The notes: a model not told the origin generated them from the letters alone. A DNA stretch of 63,298 bases, filler included, from Intoshia linei (GCA_001642005.1; 7 parts of 7 records of this genome joined end to end with filler, not necessarily neighbours in it); one strand, 5' to 3'; counted from the first letter of the whole stretch, positions 36,657 to 55,354 are shown. A program made the numbers and translations.

Positions 36657-36799
36657 NNNNNNNNNNNNNNNNNNNNNNNNNNNNNNNNNNNNNNNNNNNN
36701 TTAATTAATTAANNNNNNNNNNNNNNNNNNNNNNNNNNNNNNNNNNNNNNNNNNNNTTTATAATAAAGTTACAATAAAAACGACATTACTTATGAAACG

Positions 36800-37300
36800 A
36801 CCTAATATTTGAAAAATATTGATTGATAATATATTAAAAATTATTTTTCATAAGGAATGCGTAGATTTCTCGGGTTGAACTTTTGTATTTATATCAACTG
36901 GAATAAGCTCTATCATAATAATTTTTTTTTTTAATTTTCATACCGTTAATTATTTCACATTTTTTGATTTAATAAAATATTTTGGAAAAAAATATATGAA
37001 TACTAAAATGCTTTTTTGACCATGAAGTCGTCACTTATTTGGATTGAAATTTTTTGTGTGCATTAATAGGATACAAATGTAAAACCTGTAAATTTTTTGA
37101 AATTTTCCAACTCGTTTGATTTTCAAAAAGAGGGACAACTGGGGTTTTTGACCCGTAAGATGTGAAATTGGGAGGTTGAAATGTATCTTATTATACGTCC
37201 CGGAAAAAACTGTAATTAAAATGTGGTTTTTATAAAATTCAAGATTGTTAGTTATTGAAATAAACGATAACACACACACAGACACAAAAACCATATTATA
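36800..37300 (-). mobile_element. Helitron-family copy (5' half)
   Basis: Reverse complement of 3250-3790, including the (CA)n tract. Confidence 0.7.
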
Positions 37301-37314
37301 TACAATATGTATAT

Positions 37315-37882
37315 TAGGGTGTCGCATTTTTTTTAAATTTTTAGAATTTAATGGGCGGTTAGTAATCAATGTGTGTATTTTTAAAATAGAAGCATTATGT
37401 CGCAATTAAAAATATCTAATGATACTTATCCGAGTTGCGCTCATCATTTGAAATATCCTTTTGAAAATAGTATAAAAAAATTTAAATTTAACTTTATTTT
37501 TTTCAAAAACAACATTGTGGTAAGTTTTCATGGTTTATATTTTATGGTTTCAACACCCACGCTTAACTATACATTTAAATTTTTCAAATTTGATTCTAGC
37601 TCGATTTTTGTGGTTTTTATCGACGTTCAAATTTCGGATAGATTGAAAATTTTATAAACATTATTTCATAAATAACCGAAATTTGAACGTTCATAAAAAT
37701 CACAAAAATCGAGCTAGAATCAAATTTTAAAAATTTAAATGTATAGTTAAGCGTGGGTGTTGAAACAATAAAATATAAACCATGAAAACTTACCACAATG
37801 TTGTTTTTGTAAAATATAAAGTTAACTTTAAATTTTTCTTGACTATTTTCAAAAGGATATTTATAATGCTGAGCGCAATTCG
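37315..37882. mobile_element. Palindromic (foldback) non-autonomous element with hATm-like TAGGGTG end
   Basis: 37431-37637 is a near-perfect reverse complement of 37676-37882; a second partial copy lies at 45059-45298. Confidence 0.85.
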
Positions 37883-38470
37883 AATCGGCATCTTTGCAAC
37901 ACTACATTCTAGATTATTTTATATATCATGATAATACACCATTTCCGCACTAACCACCCGTAATTCTTTTATGGGTGTGACACAGTGCTGGTAGTGCTTC
38001 AGTGAGTCACAGATGAAAAATAAACACTCTATTACAGTTATTAACCAATGTTTAATCAAAATTTTAACGCCTTATTAACCATACTAAGTAAATAACGTAT
38101 CTAACGAGTATGTAACTTAATTAACGTTTATTACAAATTATAAGATGTATATTAATAAATTTATACAAATGTAAATGACAAATTAATCTTAATACCATTT
38201 AATAAACAGATGTAATTATCTAAATTTCAACCTAAAGTATCGGCTCAAGAGATAAATTAATTTATAAATATAATCCTTTTTAGTACAAAAGAAAATCCTA
38301 TGATACCAAGCTACGCGAGTGTATAAATGAATATTTAAATAGATACAATATTGAATAAATTGAAATTATCATGTTAAAATTTATTTGCATAAAGAAATAT
38401 CAACAATTGTTTAATTTATATTATATATATATTAAGTAAAGTATATTGTTTGAAATAAAATGTTTAAATT

Positions 38471-41340
38471 ATGAAAATTGATATTTATGTTTGGTTCCTA
38501 GTAATAATGGTATAATTTATTAGTATATAGTAAAATACTTTTTAAATTTTAATTAACAGATTGAATCACATCCAATGTTCTTTAATATTTGTATGGTATT
38601 TAGAAAAGTTTTACATATTCAGATTATGTTATACTCTGAAACCGTACAGAACATTGGAAGAGTTTCGCGTACTCTACATTTCTGACTTATGCATTTTTCC
38701 CATTTATAAATAATATCAATAATTGCATAATAATATCAACGTAATAAATTTAATGTAGCCGATGCTATGCCGAAAAAGCAATATATGTAATTTTTAGTAG
38801 TTCAATTTAAATTTCAATAATATGATGTATTCTATTGATACTATAATTAGTTGAAATATCACATTATTGTTACCAATTTTACCCTAAAGATAAATACATA
38901 ATGGGAAAAGTCTACAGCAATTATAAATTTATGGACATATGGTTGATGAAAAAATTTAAAGATTGTAAAATGAACGATAAAATACTAAAATTCAAAACCA
39001 TCAACAGACATTATCCCTATTTATATTCAATAATGTTTAAAATACCTCATTACAATTTAGGAGAATTTAGTATTACTAACAATTTTTGCGTTTTATTTCA
39101 AGTAAACCATTAAAAATATTGTGGAATGTAATATTTATTACATTTAGAACGAAAATAAATATTTCATAACTATTGGAATTACTTTGTTCAAAGATTCCAA
39201 CGAATCATTTTTTTATACTCTCATTTGCAATGAACAAGATTTTAATAAAAATTATGTGAGAACACGAGTCGTTAATGACAAAAAGAAATTCGATCCAATG
39301 AAAAACACTTCAAGGTAATTATATACAATATGTAAGTGTGCGACCATATTATTATATTAACTTGACAGTTATGTATTTCGTACAGCCGATAGCTTTGCCG
39401 ACGGCCGATTTTGAATTTATTATACAATGAGAGCATAATCTTAAAAACAATCCAATTATAGTTACAACACTAAAAAATCTTCACAAATAACATGAATTCC
39501 AGTAAAAATAAATATTTAAACACCAATGCAATGCACATTGATAACGCGTACATTGTACACGGTTATTTTTTATTTTTTTGAAATTGTAGGATAAATATTG
39601 AAATTTAATTTTTAATTTTAATATAAAAATTTGAATAATATTGATTGATAATATTTTAAATTATTTTTTACAGGGAGTGCGTAGATTTCTGGAATTAAAA
39701 TTTTTGATATACATCAACTGGAATAAGCTGTATCAGATAATATTTTTTTAAATTCTAGGATCATTAGTTATTGAATATTTTTTGTTTTAATAAAATAGTT
39801 ACTTACTAATGTTAATAAAAAAACCCGAATACTAATGTGATTTTGTACTCGTGAATGAGTCAATTTGTAAAATGAATTTTTTTCTGGATATTACCAGGAA
39901 ATCACTCTATTACTGTGATTTTTTTTAAAATTCTAGGACGTTGGGATCTTTATCTCATTATTACATTGATATGAGATTATATTGTGAATATTCACTTTTT
40001 TGAGGTTGCGATATATGATAATGCTTATCATTCAAAAAAAATATCTCAGAATTTATCTTATAAAAAATTCTATAATAGACCTTTTTTCATTTTTACAAGA
40101 AAGAGTAGTTTTGGGTTTTTCACCATGAAGATGGAAGTTTCAGAGGTTGAGTTTTGCGATAATGTTAAAGATTTTATAATATGTCACAAGATCTATGCTT
40201 TATAAATTATATGGTTGATTTTATTTTAAAAAAAACGGTAATTGGGTTTTTGGCGTTTAAAAACTAAATGTGTGACAATCAAAATTGCATTAAGACATTA
40301 CTTTCCAAACCTATATTAGACAGAACACAGAAATTAAACAGTACACTGAATTACACAGAAAATTTAAATCCGAATAAGTGATGACTTCACGGTCAAAAAA
40401 GCATTAACGGTGCGAAAATTAAAAAAAGATTATTCTGATAGAGCTTATTCCGGTTGATATAAATACAAAAGTTTAACCCGAGAAATCTACGCATTCTCGA
40501 TGAAAAATAATTTTAATATATTATCAACCAATATTTTTCAAATATTTCGATTAAAATAAAAATTGAAAATGCAAATTGATCCTACAATTTTAAAAATAAA
40601 TGTGCAGTGAACGTCTACACCTTTCCAATAAAGAAATATGGGTGAAAATCTATATAATTCATTCCTTCGAAATTTTTTTTATTGCTACGCAATTTTTAAA
40701 TTCCAAATTATTCTCAAAACATTTTGAATAAAACTAAAATAACTTTGTTAATATCATTTTTATATTTATTACAATCTTTTGCAAATTTGGTAAAATTCGA
40801 CTGAAATATGTTTATCAAGTGAAGATTTGGTTAATTATTGATACATAATTGGTATTTTTAATTAAGTATGTATTTATTAAATTGGTACTGAATATATATT
40901 ATCACATTGAAAATGATAATATAGGTTTTTATAATTTTATTTTTTCCGGAATTTATGTTATTTATGACAATTTTTAGAATTGGACTATTTTTTCTTTATT
41001 TTTAAATGTTAAACAAAAAATTAAGATGGAATAATTCACTCTTAAGTAAAAATTAATGTCATATGATGGTTCCACCTGAAACAAATTTAGGAACCACACC
41101 TTTAAAGGATTGATAATAGTGAATAGTAGGATTTTTAAGTTAGATTTTCAACGGGATTGATAATAGTGAATAGTAGAATTTTTAAGTTAGATTTTCAACG
41201 TGAATTTCATAACAGTCAACCTATTCAAATATAGAATCACTTATGTTATTAATTTTAGTTAAAATAATATTCATTTTGCTTTTAGAAAAATTCGATGGAG
41301 CTTCAATTTTTTAATTCCTTTGATATTAATTCTGTATTAA
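38471..41340 (+). CDS. Orphan multi-exon gene, putative secreted/GPI-anchored surface protein
   Basis: Hydrophobic start MKIDIYVWFLVIM; in-frame exons 38851-39101 and 39148-39314; last exon 41286-41340 RKIRWSFNFLIPLILILY*; 5' splice sites uncertain. Confidence 0.5.
39359..41224. mobile_element. Two oppositely oriented Helitron-family copies filling one intron
   Basis: 39359-40320 is a diverged copy on minus; 40350-41224 is on plus and ends AACAGTCAACCTAT. Confidence 0.65.
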
Positions 41341-41454
41341 AAGGTAATTAATACAAATTTATCATTGGTAATTGTATTGGTATTTTATATTTTTGTGTAC
41401 AAATGTTCATTGAAATTAACAATAAATTTTTATTAATGAAAAGCAAGGAATAAT

Positions 41455-44400
41455 TCATTTTGTATGTATCAGTTGCATCGATTTTAGTTGTTGTGTAAGA
41501 TTCGCTATTTCATCTTTGAGTGATTCGATCTGATTTTGATCTTGTGCAATTTCTTCAGATTGAAAACATAAGGATTTTCCCAATGGGAAAAATTCTAACG
41601 AGTCATTTATTATCTGAAATGTAAATATTATAGGCAATATTAATTTTATAACGTAAATTTAAATAATGGAGATTTATCAATTAAAATTACCATATTATGC
41701 ACATAAAGTTCAATAGCTGTATAATCGTTTTCGAAAGTTTCGTTTAAATATATAAAAAAAAAAACGTATGACCATTGATTATGTTCGTTATCAACATGGT
41801 TTTTAAAACCCTAAATTCACATTAAAATAATGAATTTTAGTCACATAATGTTATAATTTCAAAATTTGAATCAGAAAATTACGGTAGAATGTTGTTCAAA
41901 ATCGTAACTTGGTCTACTGCAAATAAAACAAGCAGTTTTCATATCGTTATCAACATGCCACTAGTAAATATTGCATTAATATATTAAAAAACAATTTGAA
42001 AAACAAGTAATAAAAAATATACCTTATTATCTCTCAACTCGGAAAATGTGTCTACAATAATACCAAATATTATATTTAATCCGATGGTAGTAATGATTAT
42101 GAAAAAGACAATGTCGAATATAGCTTTGTTGAATTTTTGATTAAAAGGTAGAATGGTTGGTGATTTTAAAAACTAAATGTATAAATCATATATATATATA
42201 TATAAATAATGTATAAATAAACATATCTTATGATATAAAAATCATGATGTATCAAGTTGTATAAATAATAATAAAATAATTATTTAAGAAATATGGTTAT
42301 TAGTACATAATGTTTTACAAAGCCGCTATCCAAAAGATAAGTTTTAAATGACATTAAACAAAAATCTGCCATGGATTCATTCCAATTTTTAGACCCAATC
42401 TCACGATACAAGGCAAAATGTATCAATATAAAAATCCAAATAATGATAACACCATATAATAATATCATTAATAATGATTGACCTATAATTAATGATAATA
42501 CAATGTATATAAAAATATAAAAAATATATAATTTAGATAGCTTATGATGAAAAATGTAAATTTTTGATTTTAATTACATCAAATACTCCATCGCCTATTG
42601 GCCCAGAATGCATCATGGTGAGCATACATTCATACATTGTGTTACAAAACATTTTGTCCTCGTCTTTTTTGAGTTCACGATATACGGCAAATGTGATGAG
42701 AGCATAAATATATAAAAATACAACTCCGTACAACGTCACCCATAAGAGAGAATCACCTATATAAGCGATAGCAATACATAATTTTTACAAATTACCATTT
42801 TTAGTTACTGCTTGAATAGCTCGTTTTATTAATTGATTGAATTGAGCTACATGTAATAGATGGAAGGAAAAAAAGTATCCATAATATATTGAACCCATTG
42901 CCGACATAATTAATAACAGCTAAATATAATTAGAGTATTGTACATATATACATTGTATATAGTATTATATATTAAAATTACAGTATGCCACAACGTTTGA
43001 AAACCCAATAAACGAACACTCAAATGTGAAACTCGCTCTATTTTTGATACAGAGCTATATATACTTTATTAAATAGATGTATATACAGGTAATCCTCGAT
43101 GGCGTTATGTATACACATATTACCACGCCAATGACGGAATACCCGTTATTTATTAATTTTATTAAGATTAGTTTTTTATATGTCCATTAGGGTGTCAAAG
43201 GTATTCTAAATACAATGCAGCTCAGTAATACTACTAAAATATAAATATATATAACATATATAGTATAATAATATTTGTATATGTAAAAGTGTATATCTGG
43301 AAACGTCCGCCCTCGTCAAATATCTTATATAGGTAAGTAGATAGATACTATTTGTACGAAGTATATCAAATAAAATATAGTGTATAAATAAAGGAATTAA
43401 AATATATACTAATGATATTCACTGAATAGATTTTTTTGAATATATAAGTATATATATTTTATCGTCCGTTTGAAATTGAGTAACTTTGTAATTTCAGTTC
43501 AGTTTTTTCCAAAAGAAAAAATTCAGTTCCAAGTAATAATTCTTATACACAGAATACTAGATAACTCATGGTTTCATATAATTTTTACTCGTAAAATGTT
43601 AAATAACAACTTGGATCATATTCTCAAATTACCAGAAATCATAAAATGACTGACATTGTAAACGGACGGTAACATAAAAATAATATTAATTTTAAGTACC
43701 CTCGCCGCAAAAATGAGGGTATTCTTATAGTAGGATGATTAAGAATCATGTATCCCACAAAGACTAGACATGTTGACAGATTGTGTAATATTGCTAAAAT
43801 TGTAAATGTCCATCCAAATTCAATAGGAAAATAATTATAGGTTGGTTTAAAGCTAGATAAATTAATTATTATTACAAACATGCAATACGTTATCAATATA
43901 AAAAAGTTTATAAACGCTTATTCAAAATATACAATAAATTGAGATAATTATAATTAGTTAAGTTTATATACTACTTAAGTACTTTCAGAATTTTAACTAA
44001 CATGAAATGTAAATTGGAAAATAAATTATAGGAGCCATGTAATATTCAGAATTATTTTGTATCGCGATGCATCGCGGTGGCTGTGTGTCAGCTTTTTTAA
44101 AAATCAAATTATAATTATATCATAATATTATTTATACTATGAATAGTATTCATTCCATACCTATTATAATTAGGTTTTCCATTTATGTAAGGTTGATTCC
44201 ATACTACTAGTATAAGAATAGAATATAAAAAACTTATTAACATCATGAATATATTGAGATGATAACTAAAATATTTGAAAAATATAATTAATAGAAAATA
44301 GATATATATACTCGTATTGTAAATAGAGTTTGACAATAGGTATTCGTTGAATTCGTTTTGTGTAATTTATGTCATCCATAATATCGACCGACCACACCAG

Positions 44401-47400
44401 TAAATCTCTTAATTTACTAGTTGGCGATGTACGGTCAACTTCATATTTAAATTTGCTAACTATATCTTCTCTCAAAACTTTCTATTAAAATATAATATAC
44501 AATAATGTATATGTTGTAAATTTTATAATATAGGATATATTAAAATAAATTATTATAAATGCGAATAAAATTGACATATCGGAAAAGTGACTAATGGATT
44601 CTGGGAGATGGAAAATAAGACAATTAAATTTCAATATAAACGATGCATGTAGCAATTCTCCTCAATGGGGTAGATGTATAATGTACAATGCAAAATTAAT
44701 GTTAAAATTAAATGTAAAATATGTACATTAAAGGTTTCAATAGTATAAAAGACAGGTGAAACATAATAAATTAAGCCATGATTGATAAGATTTAATTTTT
44801 ATTTTATTAAATATTTTCATAAGATTTTGGAATGAGTCTTAAAGTTAAATAGTCACTGAGTAATAATAAAACATTTACTATAATTCCATATTTAAAATTA
44901 CCTTATCATTACACTTGAAATACACTCTTTCTAATTCGCCATCCATTAAAATTTCAATAGATAATGTTTTACTGTTGTAATACTGTAATGCGGCCATTAT
45001 TTTTGGACAAGGTGCGAAATCTTCTATATTAATTTGTAATCATATATTCTATGTACATTAGGGTGTCATATTTTTTTAAAATTTAATGGGCGATTAGTAA
45101 TCAATGTATGTATTTTTAAAATAGAAGCACTATGTTGCAATTAAAAATAGCTAATGATAATTATCCGAGTTGCGCTCATCATTTTAATTATCCTTTTGAA
45201 AAGAGTATAGAAAATTTAAATGTGACTTTATTTTTCGCAAAAACATTATGGTAAGTGGTCATGGTTTATATTTTATCGACTCAACATCCACGCTTAACGC
45301 ATCGAACCAACACTCACGCATCAAAATTAAAAACCAGTAATACCATTATATATGATTAAAAATTATAATTAACGTAAAGCCTTAACTCAGTTTCTCTGAA
45401 CCTTTTGTATCTCGATGCCCGTTAAATTACGAACAACCAAAAAATTTTAAATCGAATATGAGCTATGGTCACACCTTGATCCCATCATAGTTGCTCCTTC
45501 ATCGTTACAATCAATTCATGTTTTTCTACAATTTCGACTTCCTTCAGTTATCTAATTAGTCTTTAAAATAATCATCTATTATTTGTACTCAACTTGTAAA
45601 GAAAGAAAATTTGATTCAATGACCTCATTACAATATTCATCTAGTAGTAACGGCTAACAGAAAATAAAAATGATAGGTATGCATTCCACACGCACCACCG
45701 ATGTACACAAACAAGAAATTAATCCTTCCTGTATTTAGTTATACCACGAAGGAGGTTAAGAGAGTACTCTTTACAGATTTAAATATATTAGATGATTAAT
45801 CCCTAATAGAGCGTACATACACGGAACATCTAAGTGCATCAAATACCTGTTGTTCCATTTCGTGTGCCTAACTTTTACAACATATCAGTTAAGACGTAGC
45901 TGTTTACCCCTTTCATTGCTGTATTAAATGATGAATTATGGATGTTAACCGATTTACAAAATTTTATTTGATAAATATTTAAAAACAAAAAAGGTGATAT
46001 GTGCAAAATGAGTTTTTCTAATAAAAAAAATGGAAACCATAATGGTACATATATATTCGTATACATCATTATTACAGCGTAATCGCGTCAAACTAAATTG
46101 CGACTATCATTAATTTTTCACTATTGGTCAGCCGATTGGACATATTAGGTGATTTAATCGTTAGATAGTATATTTACATGTTATTCTAATGAATTAGTTT
46201 TAACATTTGAAATACCCACCTTTCATTGGTATTACACCCAATTGAATAAGTTCTTTAATACGAGTAAGTATATAAAAATATTTAAATCCCGCGTTTAATG
46301 CGCTAGTAGCTATACTTTCTGGGTAGTCTTTTTTGGTATTGAATGGCTACAATTAAAAATCAATATATTAAATTGAATTAAATATTGATACTAATAGATA
46401 TAGATACTAACCACGGTATTTTCATAAAATTTTACAGCAATTTTGACTAGTGCCATCAAATCAAGACATTCCAATACATCCTATTATTTATATTAATCAT
46501 ACATTGTAGATATTATGAATGTAAATCAACGGTTCCGAATTGAGGGAAAATATTAAACAACCGGTCAACAACGGGTCGTTACAAATATATAAATTTATCT
46601 TTAAATTTATAACTAGAATTCAAGTATAAATAATTAAAATGTAAAGAAAATAGTAAAAAAACACACTAGTCAAAAATAAATGGCATATATAATTTGTGGT
46701 ATTGTATTAACTATTTAAATTTTGTATTGTTTTGTATAAATGTGAAAATTATAAACTATAACGATATTTCGCGCCACGAGAAATGCAAGATAAAATTTTT
46801 GTGGGCAAATCTGATGCTATACGCTTGAAGTGACACAGATTTGATGTATACATTACTGACAACTCGTTGGAGAAATATTTAAACAGTGTATTATTGTTTA
46901 TCAACAATATCTCTTCGAAATAAATGCAACAATTGCATGGTATATAAATATATATAATAATATAATAAAATATATTTCTTGTTTTAAAATTTTGAGTAAT
47001 TTGAATATAAAAAAAAGTTACTTTCAATTTAATTCAAATTAACAAAATAAATTAAAATTTAAATTATTTTTAAAAATCGATAGTTATAAAACGTTTTGAA
47101 TTATTTCTATTTTATTAAAAGTGACATTCAAGATCAAATTTTAATTACAGACTAATTTTTGAATTCTGAGTAAAATTGTTTAAGATGAATGTATTTGTAA
47201 ATTTTTATGTTTAGTGACACTTTTATGATTTGTATACTTAATTTTAATGTAATAATTGCTATTTGTGATTTATTTGTATAATGTTGGACATAACAATCGT
47301 AAATTACGTAATTAGTACGATTTGTAATATAGATTTTTAAATAATAAATGGGTGAATCGTCTTAGGAACAGCTGATGTAACAATATGCATTAACGCATTA

Positions 47401-50400
47401 GTCAAATGTACTTATATATCAAGGGTTCTCAACGTGGGCCACAGAAAATTTTCAACTCTAAAAAAAATTTGGTGTATTACGCCATAAAATTGCTAAAAAA
47501 AACAAAATCTATAAATGCATAATAAATTTGAAATATTAATTTGGAATTATGGTTTACATATTTTCAAAACTTTGAACCAGATGATGTAACCAGTTCTGAA
47601 CTAACTGAAAAACTCTTGAATTTAATTTAATTATTTTAAAAGTAGATTTGAAATTAGTAAGACGAATAGAAAAGGAAGGTGTATTTGAATTTATGGGAAT
47701 TTAAGACTTAAATCCAATTGTGTTTGATAATGTTCAATTAAGCATTATTGCTTTACCTACAACATGGCTTGTAGAAGCTGGATTTTCAGCAGTGGTCGAT
47801 ATTAAAAATATATAAGAGGTCAAAATTGGATGTGAACAACCGAGGAATAATGCGATTAAGATTGAATAAACTAATAGAAATTGATTACGATTCATTGTGC
47901 AACAAAAACCAATACCAAAGCAGTCACTAACCAGTATAAATTTAAATAAATAAATCATATTACTGTAAATAAAAGTAGATATTTTAAGGTTTTTTAAGGT
48001 GGGCCATGGAATTTTAATGGAAATTTAGGCAAAACTTTTTTGGGCCATCGTCTAAACAAGGTTGAAACCGCTTTTATATATGAAAAATGAATACAATGCA
48101 AAATTACCACACAACATTTATTTTTGTCTCGAGTATAGGCGTGTGATCGATGATTTTCTACCATGCTAACAATTAAAGTAGCTATAGAATCCATTAATTC
48201 AATACTCTAATAATATACATGATATTAAAATTGAAGTCTAATAAATATAAAAAATTTACAAACCTTATCTTCATCGATATCATTTCCTATTTCAGCACGC
48301 AGTATATAGTTAATATGATCACAAATTTTGCTATCAAAAACGCATATTTGGTTTTGGTAATTACCCTTTTAAAAATATACAATATACTATACAATACAAT
48401 ATACATTTTATTATGATTTACATAAATATGGAATATAAATCACATAATAAAACGTGAATTAATTCATATAAATTTTCTTAAAATATTAATGTTTAACATG
48501 ATTTAATAAATTTACAATTTTTCTAAGATATCTTTCAAATAAAATGGCAAAAAATTTTGCATGTTAAAAAAAGTACAGATGCAAACAATGCACAACATGC
48601 ACTATCATGTAATTTCCTCAATTAATCAATTAAAGTTAAATAAATCATACCGAAGTAAATTCTATGAGGGTATTTACAAGATTTATGGTAATTATAATAG
48701 TGTAAGAATTTATGCTACTATACAGCATTGTCATAAATTGAGACGTCGTGATAATTAAATTGACTGATTTTATATTGTCTGGCTGTTCTCGCAAGTAGCC
48801 CTATTAAGATGTATAATTTTAATAATAATTAAAAAGGATCAAATAACAAGAAACTCGAATGGTGCTTCATTTTATTTAAATATATAAGTAACCTGTAAAA
48901 TTTTATTCTGCCCATCACACATTAGTCCCAATATTTTCAAAACTAATTCAATCCCATAATCATCATTTGCCACATTCAAAATTTCTTCATTTTCCATGGC
49001 CATATTTATTATTCTATTAACGTCATTTGAAGTTGATATCTATAAATTTGATATTAATACTAAACATGTAATTTTATTAATCACTGTTAATGATACTTAC
49101 ATCGACTGCAACATTGACTGATTTCATTTTGTCATCAGGTGCAATTTTGTTTACCGAAACTTTTTTTTTAGATTTTGCTGTTACCAAGCCAAATCTTTTA
49201 ATTCCAGTATTCCCTGAATCTAATTGAAACTTTGGTATGGCTCTAGTTTCAGGCACTACGGATGTTTTTGTTCCATGTTTCGCACTTTTTAATCGATTTT
49301 TTATCATTGCACTAGGATTTCTCTAAAATATGCATTGATTAATACAAAGTATTAAATGTTGACTTACATAATTCGTTTTTTGTGAATTTAAAGACAGTTT
49401 TCCGTTCTTTAGTGCAGATTCTAACCTTTTAAATTGTTTTCTCTATACCCAATATTAAATTAAAAAATGAAAAGGATACACTGTAAAATGTACGTTAATA
49501 ATAAGTAAAAATAACCGATTCCATCTTATCTTTTGCATTAGTCTGTAGAGCTGATTGAAACCTAATCACATCGGCTATGGCTTCCGATATTTTCTGTTGA
49601 TGTTGATTTATTAAGGAACGTCTAGTTTTAATTTTAAAAAGTTGAAGATTTAAAAGATTAATGTTAATTAAACTTAATTTAATATATTAGTTAATCAAAA
49701 TTAATAGTTAGATAATTGTAGAAATAAATGTGATGTCTAACCTTTCCTTAATTCCGATAGAGGCATTTTCTAAGAAAGCTTTGATAGCGAAAAAAAAATT
49801 TTCCTCCCGTGAACCAAGAAAGTAGCTTACATAACTATTCTAAAAATAAATTTAGATGTATACAAAAAGAAAATACCTGAACTTGACGATTTCCCATGTA
49901 TAATATTTTAACCATTAAAGCTAAAGCTTCTCTAATGATGATGCTGTTGTTTTTGGATAAATGTGGAGAAAGAAATTTTACAATGCCATATTCATTTAAA
50001 GCATATTGGACACTTTTTATATCTTTCAAAATTCTAAATACATTATATTATAAAATCATTACAAAGTAATCAAACTTTTTAATTTTTTTATTGTTTATAT
50101 TGTAATCTTCAGGTAATTTAACAATTTCGTTGTGTATTAAGCATCGCAAAATTTTCATTGTTCGTACGTCCACTTCTTCCTGTTCAGCCTTTTCTTTTTC
50201 GTCATTAAACGTAAAATGAATTGATATTCTTAATTGAATTAAATTAATTTAAATATTATTTTATACATCACATATCAACTAGGTGACACAAAAACCATGG
50301 GCTGATCAAAGTGCACCGGAATGACATAAAATAATATACACCACGTATAAATAATCATAACATGGTTGGATAGTAGAGTGTTCTCTGAAGCATTCTATAA

Positions 50401-50590
50401 CCGCAAGGTATCTTCCAATAATGGATTTAATGTTTGGAACTCGTATTAGTTTTTCAACGCTTTCTTCCAATCTAGGAAAATCAAAAAATCTCTTAGCCTT
50501 TATCTTTATATTACCGGAACGCTCTTTCGGGCTTTTAGTTGTAGTATTAGAAACATTAAACATTAAAATATCAGTAAAATCAATAATCAC
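41455..50590 (-). CDS. ITPR: IP3-receptor/ryanodine-receptor-family Ca2+ release channel (divergent ITPR-like), 3' half
   Basis: RIH-associated motifs LKILGLMCDGQNKILQ, LREQPDNIKSVNL, GNYQNQ; SIEIL...LERVYF; TM region FHLLHV...AVTKNG; DIVFFIIITTIGLNIIFGIIVDTFSELRD; CFICS...HVDNEHNQWSY; C-terminal coiled coil. 5' boundary uncertain. Confidence 0.92.
42307..42482 (-). other. ITPR-like pore exon B, tandem duplicate, candidate mutually exclusive exon
   Basis: AG|GT CAA TCA...CAT TAT|GT; 176 nt, phase 1 to 0, open frame; GQSLLMILLYGVIIIWIFILIHFALYRE...NESMADFCLMSFKTYLLDSGFVKHY. Confidence 0.75.
42578..42756 (-). other. ITPR-like pore exon A (TM5, luminal loop, pore helix, filter)
   Basis: AG|GT GAT TCT...TTT GAT|GT; 179 nt, phase 1 to 0; GDSLLWVTLYGVVFLYIYALITFAVYRE...CNTMYECMLTMMHSGPIGDGVFD. 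Confidence 0.9.
47420..48073 (+). mobile_element. hAT Buster deletion derivative in an ITPR intron
   Basis: TIRs CAAGGGTTCTCAAC / GTTGAAACCGCTT; TTATATAT on both flanks; IIALPTTWLVEAGFSAV motif. Confidence 0.8.
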
Positions 50591-52097
50591 AATGCGCAAA
50601 ATATCATACAGAATCAAATTAAATAAATTGTTAATGTTGAATTAATAATAATGAAACAAAAATAATCGGTGTCTGATTGATGTCTAACTAACGGGATTTA
50701 GGTAAATAGGATTACATAGTTTAATGTAATTATTATTATTATTAATTATAAATTATAATGTAATTATTAATCAGAATCAAAGTATTCATTTTCCGGTTTA
50801 ATTATTAATAATCCACAAATATTTTATGTATTATATTTTATAACCACATAATACCGTTAACAATATCTAAGTTAAATTAATAATAAATTGAGATTGATGA
50901 AAACTGTTTCCATCGAGTAGTCTGATGTTTTTAAAAATTATGATGATAAAATTTAAATTTAAATTTAACGGAATTTTTGTACTTGTGAAAAATTCATAGT
51001 CCGTTAATCAAGAATTTTTTTCCGTTAACGAAAAATTAGCCTGTATAATGAAAATAAACTAAATGACAAAGTTACGAAAAATATATTATATATATTTTAG
51101 GAAACTATTTTGTCGACGTGGGCCTGACTTTTTCAAAAATTATACTTTAAAAACATAGCAATCATAAATATACTTACATTTCTCATCATGTATGTATTTT
51201 TGTTTTGTGAAAAAGTTAACACCCTAATGGCTATACAATATGTATTTCAATTTTCAATATTTAAATTTTTTTAAATAATTCTCGAAATTAATTTGATTAC
51301 TCATTACAACGTGTCAGCCCATAAAGCCAATATAGACTATATTCATTCGATAAAATCAATAGTAAAAATAAGTTAAATTCCATATACTATACATATTATA
51401 TTATGTTATATTATATTAAATATGTATTTTATTATAAATATTTATTGTTATAAGTACATATAATTAATTTTAATTTAATTTAATTAATAATTTTATAATA
51501 TCAATTACAGTGAGTAAATTTATATATATATATATTACTAGTCGAAGTCCAGCGATTACAGGGCTGCGGGCAAACAAATAGTGATGGTAGCTTACTAATT
51601 TTATCTGAAATTAACTTGAATTTTTTTTTGTTTGTTTTAAAGATTGTAGATAAATGGCAAATCGAGAGGGTTATTCCTAATGAAATTTAAAATTTTTTTT
51701 ACAATTTTGTTCAGCATAGCAAAAAACCTAGATACTGAAATATACTTTTTTTTAATTTGAGAAAAGTTGTAAAAATTAATACCCTTATGGTATCATGCTG
51801 ATATAAAATTGAAATAAATAAAAATTTAACACATTTGATATACACTTTAATTTTTATTTTAAAAATTTTTTATTTTTATAACACGTTAACAACTATACAT
51901 GAGAATAAGTGAAGCCACATTTGTAGAATATTCTAATTAAATAATTTTTATCCTTCATAAATTCCAGGGATACGATATTTGGTGTATTTTCACATTAATG
52001 TTTTCATTGTTTAGTGAGTAAATTATTAATTTTATTTTTATGCGGCGGTATTATAACACAAATATAAAATCACAAATACAATGTCAAAATGAATATA

Positions 52098-53671
52098 CAC
52101 TGCGTTCCAAATTATTATGCAAACATTAAAAAAAACTTTAATAATTTAAAAAATAGTCACTTAATTCTATTAATTTTTTTATCATAATTTAATCATTCAC
52201 CATATACAACTTTATTGTTACCAAAAAAATTTATCACGTTTCCAAAAAAACATTCTAGCTAACATTTTATATTGTTGAGTAATTTTTAGTGTGCCAAATT
52301 ATTATGCTAATCAAAATTTAAAATAATTATTGGTAAATTAATATCACTTACAGTTGACGAAAAAGATAAAATCCTTAAAATAACGAAATATCGATAAATG
52401 AAATAGCTTCAAATTTAGAACGTGATCATCGCACAATCCGTCGATATATAGAAAACCCTTCCAACAAGAGGAAAAAAAAGGCAAAGGGATCATTCAAAGG
52501 AGTATCTATTAAAGATATATCCATATTGAACTAGAAATGGTCCGAAACCCTTTTAGCACTTCTCTAGAGATATTTAAATCATCAGGATAAATTGATATAC
52601 CCAAAACTACGAGATGCAGACTATTAAAAACGGTTGGTATAGTAAGTCATGCTAAAGGTAAACCAGGTTTAACCAAACGACACCTGGAATTATGACTATT
52701 CTGGGTTAAAAATTACATGAAGATAAATTTTTCAAATGTAATTTTTACCGATGAAACCAGAATATCTTTAGATGGGCCAGATTCGTGGAGATCGTGTATA
52801 CTTGTATACCTGTTACTTGTTCGATCACCACCAAACCGTTTAAGGCGGTATAAAGAAGTGGGAATATAATGATTTGGACAGACATTGTGAAAGACATTAT
52901 TATTGGGCTTTTTAAGTTAGATAATTGAGTCAATATTAATTCTGAAAAATACTGTGCGTTTTTAAAAAATAATGATTTTTTGTGAATAAAAAAAAGAGGA
53001 AAAAGCTTTCTTAAAAATTTTATTTTTATGCATGATTATGCCTTAAGTCACGCGTCCCGTCATAAAAAAGAATATCTTTCATTAAATGGCTATGGATTAA
53101 AAAAAATAATGTGTTGGCCGCCAAATTCTCCTGATCTTAATTATATTGAAAATGTATAGTCCATAATTAAAAGAAAGATATACAGTGGGAATAAACAATA
53201 CCAATCAAAAAACGATATATGGCATGCAATTTTGACAGAAATCAAAACAATCGATGCAAAAACAATTGAAAATTGCACGAAATCTAAACGGATCAACGAC
53301 TTTTTCTTGTAATATCCCTGAAAGGGGGTATAATAATATGTAAACTTTAATTACATTTTTTTTGCTTGAATTTGGTTTAAAATACAATGGATTATATTAT
53401 TTAAATATTTCAAAATATTTATTTATTCGTATTAACATTGAAATTATTGTTTAATATTAATTTGCATAATAATTTGGCTCACCAAAAATCACAAAATTTT
53501 CTTAAATCTTTGTGTATTCATTTTTTTTGGAATACATTACATTTTTCTTGGGACATTAAAGTATTTTAGTTGAAATATATAAATATGATAAAAAAATTAA
53601 TAGAATTAAAAGTAACTACTTTTTAAATTATTAATGTTTTTAATGTTTGCATAATAACTTGGAACGCAGTG
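52098..53671 (+). mobile_element. Full-length Tc1 transposon (IR/DR type) with degenerate DDE transposase
   Basis: TA|CACTGCGTTCCAAATTATTATGCAAAC...GTTTGCATAATAACTTGGAACGCAGTG|TA; long TIRs with internal direct repeats; VIFTDETRISLDGPD, FMHD, WPPNSPDLNYIEN, with stops. Confidence 0.93.
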
Positions 53672-54283
53672 TATTTATATTTCAGCTACAATATATTTGG
53701 GAATCACAAAATATGTTTAGGTTGTAATAAATTTTCCTTTATAAAAATTATCTTAAGGATACTTATATTTAATACATACACTATGATGTAATAATGATAT
53801 GATACATTTTAATCTTAACATGTTATTTAACTTAGCTTCAATAATATAGCAAGTAATTTATAATAATTTTTACGTAATGTCAATCAACATTAATGTAAAT
53901 AATATTCATATACAACATATATTTTACGAAAAATACTTTTTTTAATGAAATTACTTCTGCATACAAATATTTTTACATTGCATTAATAGTTTTATTAATT
54001 TTTTAATTGTAATTATTTAGTTTGTAATACATATAAAAATACATAATACATTAATTTATTCTATATTGTAATACATTATGAGAGATTAAACATATAATTA
54101 TAATGTGACACAAATGTAAAATGAAATTTTGATAATATCATGACATTAAATCAAGTAGATATCCAAGTTAAATGTCCTACTCAATGAGTACGACTCACTT
54201 TTTTAATATTTTTAATGCTTAGTAATATAAAATTGTTAAAAACCCAAAATTTTCAGAATTTTCAGTAATTCGGTGATATAGAC

Positions 54284-54549
54284 CAGTGATTCTTAACCGA
54301 TGCGACAAAAGTAGAGTTCGAGTGCATCGCAAAGAAATATGAGTTTAATTTACCACCAAAAATATCAATATTCCATCATCCATTAAATTCTTTACTATAT
54401 TTAAGTTTACAAAATAAAAATATTTTTGTATTATGATATTTATCGTTTTTAATCTTTCCACATTTTTGAAAATCGGTGTGTTTTTTATACGCCCAAATTT
54501 TTATTTATTTAGTAGGTGCACCTGAAATAAAAAAGGCTAAGAAACATTG
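54284..54549. mobile_element. hAT Buster-type MITE
   Basis: Perfect 8-bp TSD ATATAGAC; TIRs CAGTGATTCTTAACC / GGCTAAGAAACATTG. Confidence 0.85.
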
Positions 54550-55354
54550 ATATAGACAGACACTCAATATACGTTTATATCTGAATTTTTTAATCTTGCA
54601 ATCGTATAATTTTCCGCTGACTGAATTATGACTGAAAAAATTAAATATTTATAAGGTGAAAGTTGGTCCATTAAGATTTAACCGTATTTTCAATTTTTAA
54701 GGGGCAGAAAGAAGGGGTTCGTGGAACTTTCAGTTTAAGAACCATTGTTATACATGTATATGCCGTCAATATTTAAAATGAAACAATCTTATTTAATATA
54801 AATCTTTTAAAAATGGCGTAATACAGCAGGATTGGTTCATCTCTTGTGATTAATATTGAATATAATCTTAGATTGTAATCATAATTACATATATTTAAAA
54901 TATTAATATGTATAAACTTCTTATGCTATAATTTGGACAAAAGTACCAGTATTTTGTAAACTATTAGATTGTATTAAGAATATAGAGCCAACGGTTACAG
55001 GTACAAGAATTGTAAAATTCTCAAATATAAAGGACTCATTATACATTATTAATACATTAATCATGTTAGATTGTAATTTTTTTTCATTATCAATTATATT
55101 AATAATAATTAATATTTTGGACGCGTATTATTTATGTATAACATTTTGGATTCCATATAACAGTATATACTGTATATATAAATAATATATATTTTATAAT
55201 ATATTATATATATTTCTGTATAAAAATATTAAAATTTTAATTTTTTTGTTTAAANNNNNNNNNNNNNNNNNNNNNNNNNNNNNNNNNNNNNNNNNNNNTT
55301 AATTAATTAANNNNNNNNNNNNNNNNNNNNNNNNNNNNNNNNNNNNNNNNNNNN

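Follow-up and report, generated by a model that had tools for sequence, protein, structure and literature searches.

In the window analysed here, a stretch of 63,298 nucleotides (filler included) that joins seven records of the Intoshia linei genome (GCA_001642005.1), the minus strand carries a gene for an IP3R-like channel in which two tandem exons, here called A and B, lie between the same constitutive neighbours at the level of the conduction pore. Single inclusion of A or B is the sole productive frame. On balance, we favour the reading that A and B are a genuine, selected pair of mutually exclusive exons in a gene of an orthonectid-like animal, in which B would encode a strongly altered, non-canonical pore loop.

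The gene can be identified as an IP3R-like member of the RyR/IP3R superfamily. Its layout was read directly from the minus strand of the piece that spans 36757-55254 (about 25% GC), where the 3' portion of a gene with many exons is found (Table 1), its GT..AG introns near the cassettes measuring 39-134 nt and the N-terminal ~1600 residues of the channel falling outside the piece. Positions 43234-43274 were masked as N in the later local analyses. The median intron length of I. linei is 57 bp (PMC6543705), and the short introns of the channel gene fit this published value. The sequence-only reading had already proposed an IP3R-like channel, and this identity is supported by two lines of evidence. 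First, the exon at 48648-48800 matches RIH_assoc above the curated cut-off, thus placing the gene in the superfamily. Second, a profile of A and B, searched over 1.84 billion representative proteins, gave 160 matches, of which 150 are listed, and the best of them aligns with solved IP3R and RyR structures. This match, P0001, the closest named relative, is an I. linei hypothetical protein (A3Q56_05304) with an Ion_trans domain, represented by a partial gene model of 318 amino acids. Compared exon by exon, P0001 is 66-86% identical to the channel gene over the C-terminal exons and 88% identical over exon A, and it has the same C-terminal architecture, with TM4-TM6, the CxxC/His motif and the tail. 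This level of identity points either to a paralogue of A3Q56_05304 or to its counterpart in an orthonectid near to, yet distinct from, the I. linei reference. Against solved human IP3R3, IP3R2 and RyR1 it reaches E = 2e-36 to 1e-33 in alignments that cover the pore helix, the filter, TM6 and the C-terminal domain, and it scores 39 bits against Pfam Ion_trans. Single exons of the channel gene stay below threshold for Ion_trans when taken alone (21.8 and 13.2 bits), and neither exon A alone nor exon B alone finds a match in the PDB with phmmer at E up to 10. Further relatives among the matches listed come from annelids and one mollusc; P0096, a full-length member of the clade that represents a different gene, combines Ins145_P3_rec, MIR, RIH, RIH_assoc and Ion_trans domains.

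Table 1. Exons, introns and splice sites of the channel gene, in the direction of transcription (positions counted from the first letter of the window)
Feature	Positions	Strand	Remarks
Upstream exon, part of RIH_assoc domain	48648..48800	-	Pfam PF08454, 33.9 bits (cut-off 28.5)
Constitutive exon preceding the cassettes	42796..42919	-	S4-S5 region; ends ...AVTKN plus base 1 of a Gly codon; donor GTAATT; aligns with P0001 residues 51-92
Intron before exon A	42757..42795	-	39 nt, GT..AG; shortest in the C-terminal region of the gene
Exon A	42578..42756	-	179 nt, phase 1 to 0, open; acceptor TATAG, donor GTAATT; TM5, luminal loop, pore helix (C-x5-C), filter GDGVFD; family-typical
A-B intron	42483..42577	-	95 nt, 13% GC
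Exon B	42307..42482	-	176 nt, phase 1 to 0, open; acceptor TATAG, donor GTACTA; family-like TM5, then divergent 30-residue loop/helix ending GFVKHY
Alternative in-frame GT (GTAAAA) within exon B	42317..42318	-	12 nt upstream of the exon B donor GTACTA
Intron between exon B and the TM6 exon	42173..42306	-	134 nt, 13% GC
Constitutive TM6 exon	42023..42172	-	Starts FLKSP...; post-filter linker and TM6 (…GLNIIFGIIVDTFSELRDNK); Pfam Ion_trans 21.8 bits; 86% identical to P0001
Constitutive exon, CxxC half of C-terminal zinc-finger-like motif	41883..41960	-	
Constitutive exon, His half of C-terminal zinc-finger-like motif	41691..41810	-	GFKNHVDNEHNQW...
Final coding exon	41455..41613	-	FFPLGKSL..., coiled-coil-like tail; includes the stop codon

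The frame logic was checked by local joining of the preceding exon, A, B and the TM6 exon, whereas searches and models used single exons. With either A or B between the constitutive exons the frame reads through; inclusion of both gives a stop after VNHY, four codons into B, and skipping of both causes a frameshift with a stop after 10 codons. The two cassettes differ in length by exactly one codon (3 nt). The earlier description of two homologous, AG/GT-bounded, open cassettes of 179 and 176 nt in phase 1 to 0, exactly one of which can be used, is therefore borne out by the reading of the strand and by the frame check. Exclusivity acts at the protein level because the products of double inclusion and of skipping both carry early stops. 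Steric exclusion of co-splicing is unlikely, since the A-B intron measures 95 nt while an intron of 39 nt is spliced in the same gene. A search for a selector RNA structure at the cassettes found only AT-rich inverted repeats, none of them significant, the best being a 16-bp stem that encloses the exon B acceptor (-7.7 kcal/mol, z = -1.35). The splice sites of exon B fall within the range of the other sites in the channel gene: its donor, GTACTA, is atypical when compared with the predominant GTAATT, and other constitutive donors of the gene deviate too. Use of the putative GTAAAA donor inside exon B would drop VKHY, the last four codons, so that the exon would end ...DSGF.

Exon A holds TM5, the pore helix and the filter, as had been proposed, since it corresponds to solved IP3R3 through the P0001 alignment. 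The canonical filter, GGVGD (IP3R) or GGIGD (RyR), is absent from exon A, exon B and P0001. Exon A reads GDGVFD in its place, the final acidic residue occupying the site of the Asp in IP3R, and P0001 reads SGVFE, which is one residue shorter than exon A and has no GD. A short and variable filter is found throughout the relatives listed from the profile search, and the lophotrochozoan clade to which the channel gene belongs has no canonical GGVGD filter. In the genomic fragments of this clade, among the matches listed, the final residue of the open reading frame is always Val, that is, the translated GT donor, which means that the exon boundary is conserved across many invertebrates.

Judged by their similarity, A and B are homologous cassettes. 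Indeed, they match each other with E = 2e-05 in pairwise BLASTP and E = 1e-07 in tblastn within the piece, where the next match is at 0.03 or worse. Over the first 28 full codons, which make up the TM5 half, they are identical at 15 residues, eight of which use different codons; together with the split Gly, this agrees with the 16 shared residues counted in the sequence-only reading. The homology claimed there for the whole cassette holds in the TM5 half. In the pore-helix and filter half there is no detectable similarity, and the two exons are aligned by two landmarks alone, FC and SG. A family HMM built from 161 homologous segments makes the difference between the halves explicit, as exon A scores 95.8 bits as a whole, 47.7 in its TM5 half and 37.2 in its pore half, and exon B 35.6 bits as a whole, 32.3 in its TM5 half (28 codons) and 0.1 in its pore half. 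Exon B retains the family columns S2, L3, G10, F22, A23 and R26, that is, the motifs SLL, G, FA and YRE, and alignment by hand adds C37 (the first pore-helix Cys) and G51 (the filter Gly, 99% conserved). The Ser before G51 is common to A and B and is lineage-specific, occurring in 2% of the family. Exon B lacks the second Cys (C43, 99% conserved), the two conserved Thr (T39 and T46) and the acidic end of the filter, and reads GFVKHY. The proposal that B encodes a second recognisable pore-filter module accordingly fails, given 0.1 bits against the 37.2 of exon A in this half and the loss of C43 and of the acidic end.

Other approaches add little on exon B. The exon has no third copy elsewhere in the piece. 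A search for exon-sized open reading frames in 5.8 billion proteins returned none for B and none for A either, so that the blank for B is uninformative. Leads for exon B in the ESM Atlas stay below 0.9 (PKD_channel and Ion_trans clusters, 0.85-0.89) and are taken as no evidence. A single-sequence AF2 model of B predicts a helix-loop-helix (H3-28 and H35-51, mean pLDDT 72), which is weak evidence that B may be compatible with TM5 and a short pore helix; the corresponding model of A, a single long helix, offers no useful comparison. The luminal loop of exon B also contains an N-x-S sequon (NES, 42379-42387) that is absent from exon A and could be due to chance.

The pattern of substitution points to selection on the protein encoded by B. 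In the TM5 half, synonymous differences between A and B are saturated (pS 0.78) and non-synonymous ones are not (pN 0.35), and identity by codon position is 54% at position 1, 79% at position 2 and 36% at position 3. These values, and the outcome of the simulation described below, uphold for the TM5 half the earlier suggestion that B is old and selected at the protein level. In the pore half, pN and pS against A hardly differ (0.55 and 0.57), and the probability that this half of B is open by chance alone is about 6%. Neutral decay was simulated by letting a copy of A decay under local base composition, with a conservative branch to B of dB = 0.58 substitutions per site. Under these conditions the copy stays open with a probability of 0.015-0.02, keeps both AG and GT with a probability of 0.08-0.10, and keeps an identity of at least 22/28 at position 2 with a probability of about 0.03. 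Lifelong neutral decay of B since the duplication is rejected, with a joint probability that does not exceed 5e-5 at dB = 0.58 and stays under 1% even at dB = 0.3, in a simulation that tests lifelong neutrality and is compatible with a recent loss of B. Thus, B was under selection as a coding exon over the greater part of its history; since an old duplication, purifying selection has mostly kept it open, flanked by splice sites and TM5-like.

This compatibility with recent loss leaves a serious possibility, although one that we rate below an even chance, that B, once an alternative exon or else an old duplicate, is by now dead or dying and no longer enters productive mRNA, all functional transcripts using A. 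On such an account, which we hold at the same level, the TM5 half would still look selected because inactivation came late in the time since the duplication. The pore half of B, which has lost nearly all the residues conserved in the family and in which pN is about equal to pS, is what would be expected, and the same holds for the non-consensus donor. Moreover, all 150 matches listed, of 160, are A-like and none is B-like, and the gene model of A3Q56_05304 contains only an A-like exon. Against an exon already dead stand the intact features of B, which is free of stops and frameshifts and retains its splice dinucleotides, and whose length differs from that of A by a multiple of three. Its GC content of 27% (23% and 30% in the two halves) matches the 26-35% of the constitutive exons and is double the 13% of both flanking introns. 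In addition, decay should erode a duplicate evenly, yet the TM5 half has clearly been preserved better than the pore half, even though the family conserves the two halves of A-type exons about equally, as the scores of exon A indicate. A frameshifted pseudoexon was also considered for B and rejected, as only one of its three frames is open and the other two are full of stops and show no similarity to a pore helix.

A further reading accepts that B is used and gives it another role, either as a poison-exon/NMD switch together with A, or as an exon spliced through other sites such as the in-frame GTAAAA at 42318. Double inclusion does stop within B, an A-B intron of 95 nt has sufficient length for splicing in a gene with introns of 39 nt, and the alternative donor is there. 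Poison exons show nucleotide-level conservation without codon structure. B shows the opposite, with position 2 conserved, position 3 saturated and a single open frame, a signature of protein-level selection on that frame, and we regard this reading as improbable. That the resemblance of A and B is due to chance or to an assembly artefact is very hard to sustain: open stretches rich in Ile, Leu, Phe and Tyr are common in AT-rich DNA of a genome with 25% GC, but exon B scores 33-36 bits against the family HMM where the best of 278 other open stretches in the piece reaches 10.3, so that its TM5 match is not an artefact of composition, it keeps the specific family motifs, and a collapse or duplication error in assembly would not leave copies as far apart as these (56% nucleotide identity in the better half).

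If A and B are a selected pair, as we favour, the spliceosome would link the upstream exon to one of the cassettes, A or B, and this cassette to the TM6 exon. Products with both cassettes or with neither would be unproductive, so that frame, and not steric hindrance, would enforce exclusivity. Exon A would represent the default, family-typical pore, and exon B would give a subunit of full length in which TM5 is normal and the pore loop is remodelled. In this loop one Cys would replace the C-x5-C pair, the pore helix would be about two residues shorter, and the filter would end in GFVKHY, with Lys, His and Tyr where the family has an acidic residue. In IP3R the filter Asp is required for conduction, and pore-dead subunits act dominantly. 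For these reasons a B subunit is expected to conduct cations poorly or differently; it would most likely be a poor conductor of Ca2+ or altered in selectivity, and its presence in mixed tetramers would modulate or suppress release. The sequence-only suggestion that one gene makes two channels of different conductance or selectivity is a proposal of the same kind. We advance only tentatively, as doubtful in its full extent, the proposal that two isoforms, one with a family-typical acidic filter and the other with a Lys/His/Tyr filter and a single-Cys pore helix, swap the whole TM5-pore-loop module, and that B, by itself or in mixed tetramers, alters selectivity or acts as a built-in dominant negative on Ca2+ release.

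Substitution of tandem duplicated exons is known in transmembrane segments of other channels, such as exons 8/8a of CaV1.2 (IS6) and 5N/5A of NaV. In these pairs the copies are near-identical in length, frame-compatible when used singly, and differ by few residues, unlike A and B, in which half of the exon has diverged beyond recognition. The known splice sites SI-SIII of IP3R lie in cytosolic ligand-binding and regulatory regions, outside the pore. A review of the class to which the CaV1.2 and NaV pairs belong records an enrichment of tandem duplicated exons in ion channels (PMC9741552). Exons 12a/12b of protostome Cav3 are the closest functional precedent. According to PMC5379919, which cites Senatore et al. 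2014, these exons belong to the domain II pore loop and switch between Na+ and Ca2+ permeation. Those of Lymnaea LCav3 are likewise tandem and mutually exclusive and encode part of the pore loop (turret and descending helix), and the copies, unequal in length and in their cysteines, alter permeation (PMC5379919). Two differences from Cav3 as presented there have to be noted (PMC5379919). Cav3 is a four-domain, voltage-gated channel of the plasma membrane in which one of four pore loops is swapped, whereas the release channel with A or B is intracellular and tetrameric, and all its subunits would change, TM5 included. Moreover, 12a/12b are conserved across protostomes and have been shown in cDNA, whereas A and B are known here from genomic sequence.

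Within the superfamily itself, the vertebrate IP3R1-3 (6dqj, 9ymz, 7lhe and others) are structural counterparts, and P0001 aligns with IP3R3 at E = 2e-36. The Tribolium IP3R has an optional exon (residues 922-929) that is cytosolic and outside the pore (PMC4204029). The same source describes mutually exclusive exons in insect RyR (Tribolium 19a/19b), which are confirmed by cDNA and conserved in insects (PMC4204029). This pair belongs to the same superfamily as the A/B gene, but to RyR and not to an IP3R-like channel, and it is not placed in the pore in the text consulted (PMC4204029). A literature search returned no mutually exclusive pore exon pair in IP3R/RyR-type channels, and only cytosolic sites and the RyR pair were found. 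If both are used, A and B would be the first case in the IP3R/RyR superfamily of pore exons that exclude each other; they would extend a known type of event, the substitution of tandem duplicated exons, to a new channel family, with an unusual, half-diverged cassette.

Ion channels of the plasma membrane have repeatedly been diversified through tandem duplicated, mutually exclusive exons. If B is expressed, a highly reduced parasite with a tiny genome would build from a single gene two release channels with distinct conduction pathways, thus offering a natural experiment on the features of pore helix and filter that such channels need and, possibly, an endogenous dominant-negative mechanism. 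If B is unused, it is instructive as a cassette whose transmembrane half has long outlived its pore half.

The piece that contains the channel gene also carries several repeats. A remnant of a Tc1/mariner-type DNA transposon lies at 52095-53674, with inverted repeats of about 235 bp (52095-52328 and 53442-53674, 79% identical) that enclose broken transposase open reading frames at 52717-52869 and 53028-53159, the latter with a weak match to DDE_3 (18.8 bits, below cut-off). At 37428-37885 lies a foldback repeat, a palindrome of about 455 bp with 90% self-complementarity, and a partial copy of it, 89% identical, is present in an intron of the channel gene (45073-45298). Downstream of the gene, a dispersed family with members of about 150-180 bp occurs in both orientations (36804-36979, 39575-39797 and 40403-40596, 80-91% identical), and just downstream of the stop codon a 47-bp unit is tandemly duplicated at 41107-41200 with 98% identity.
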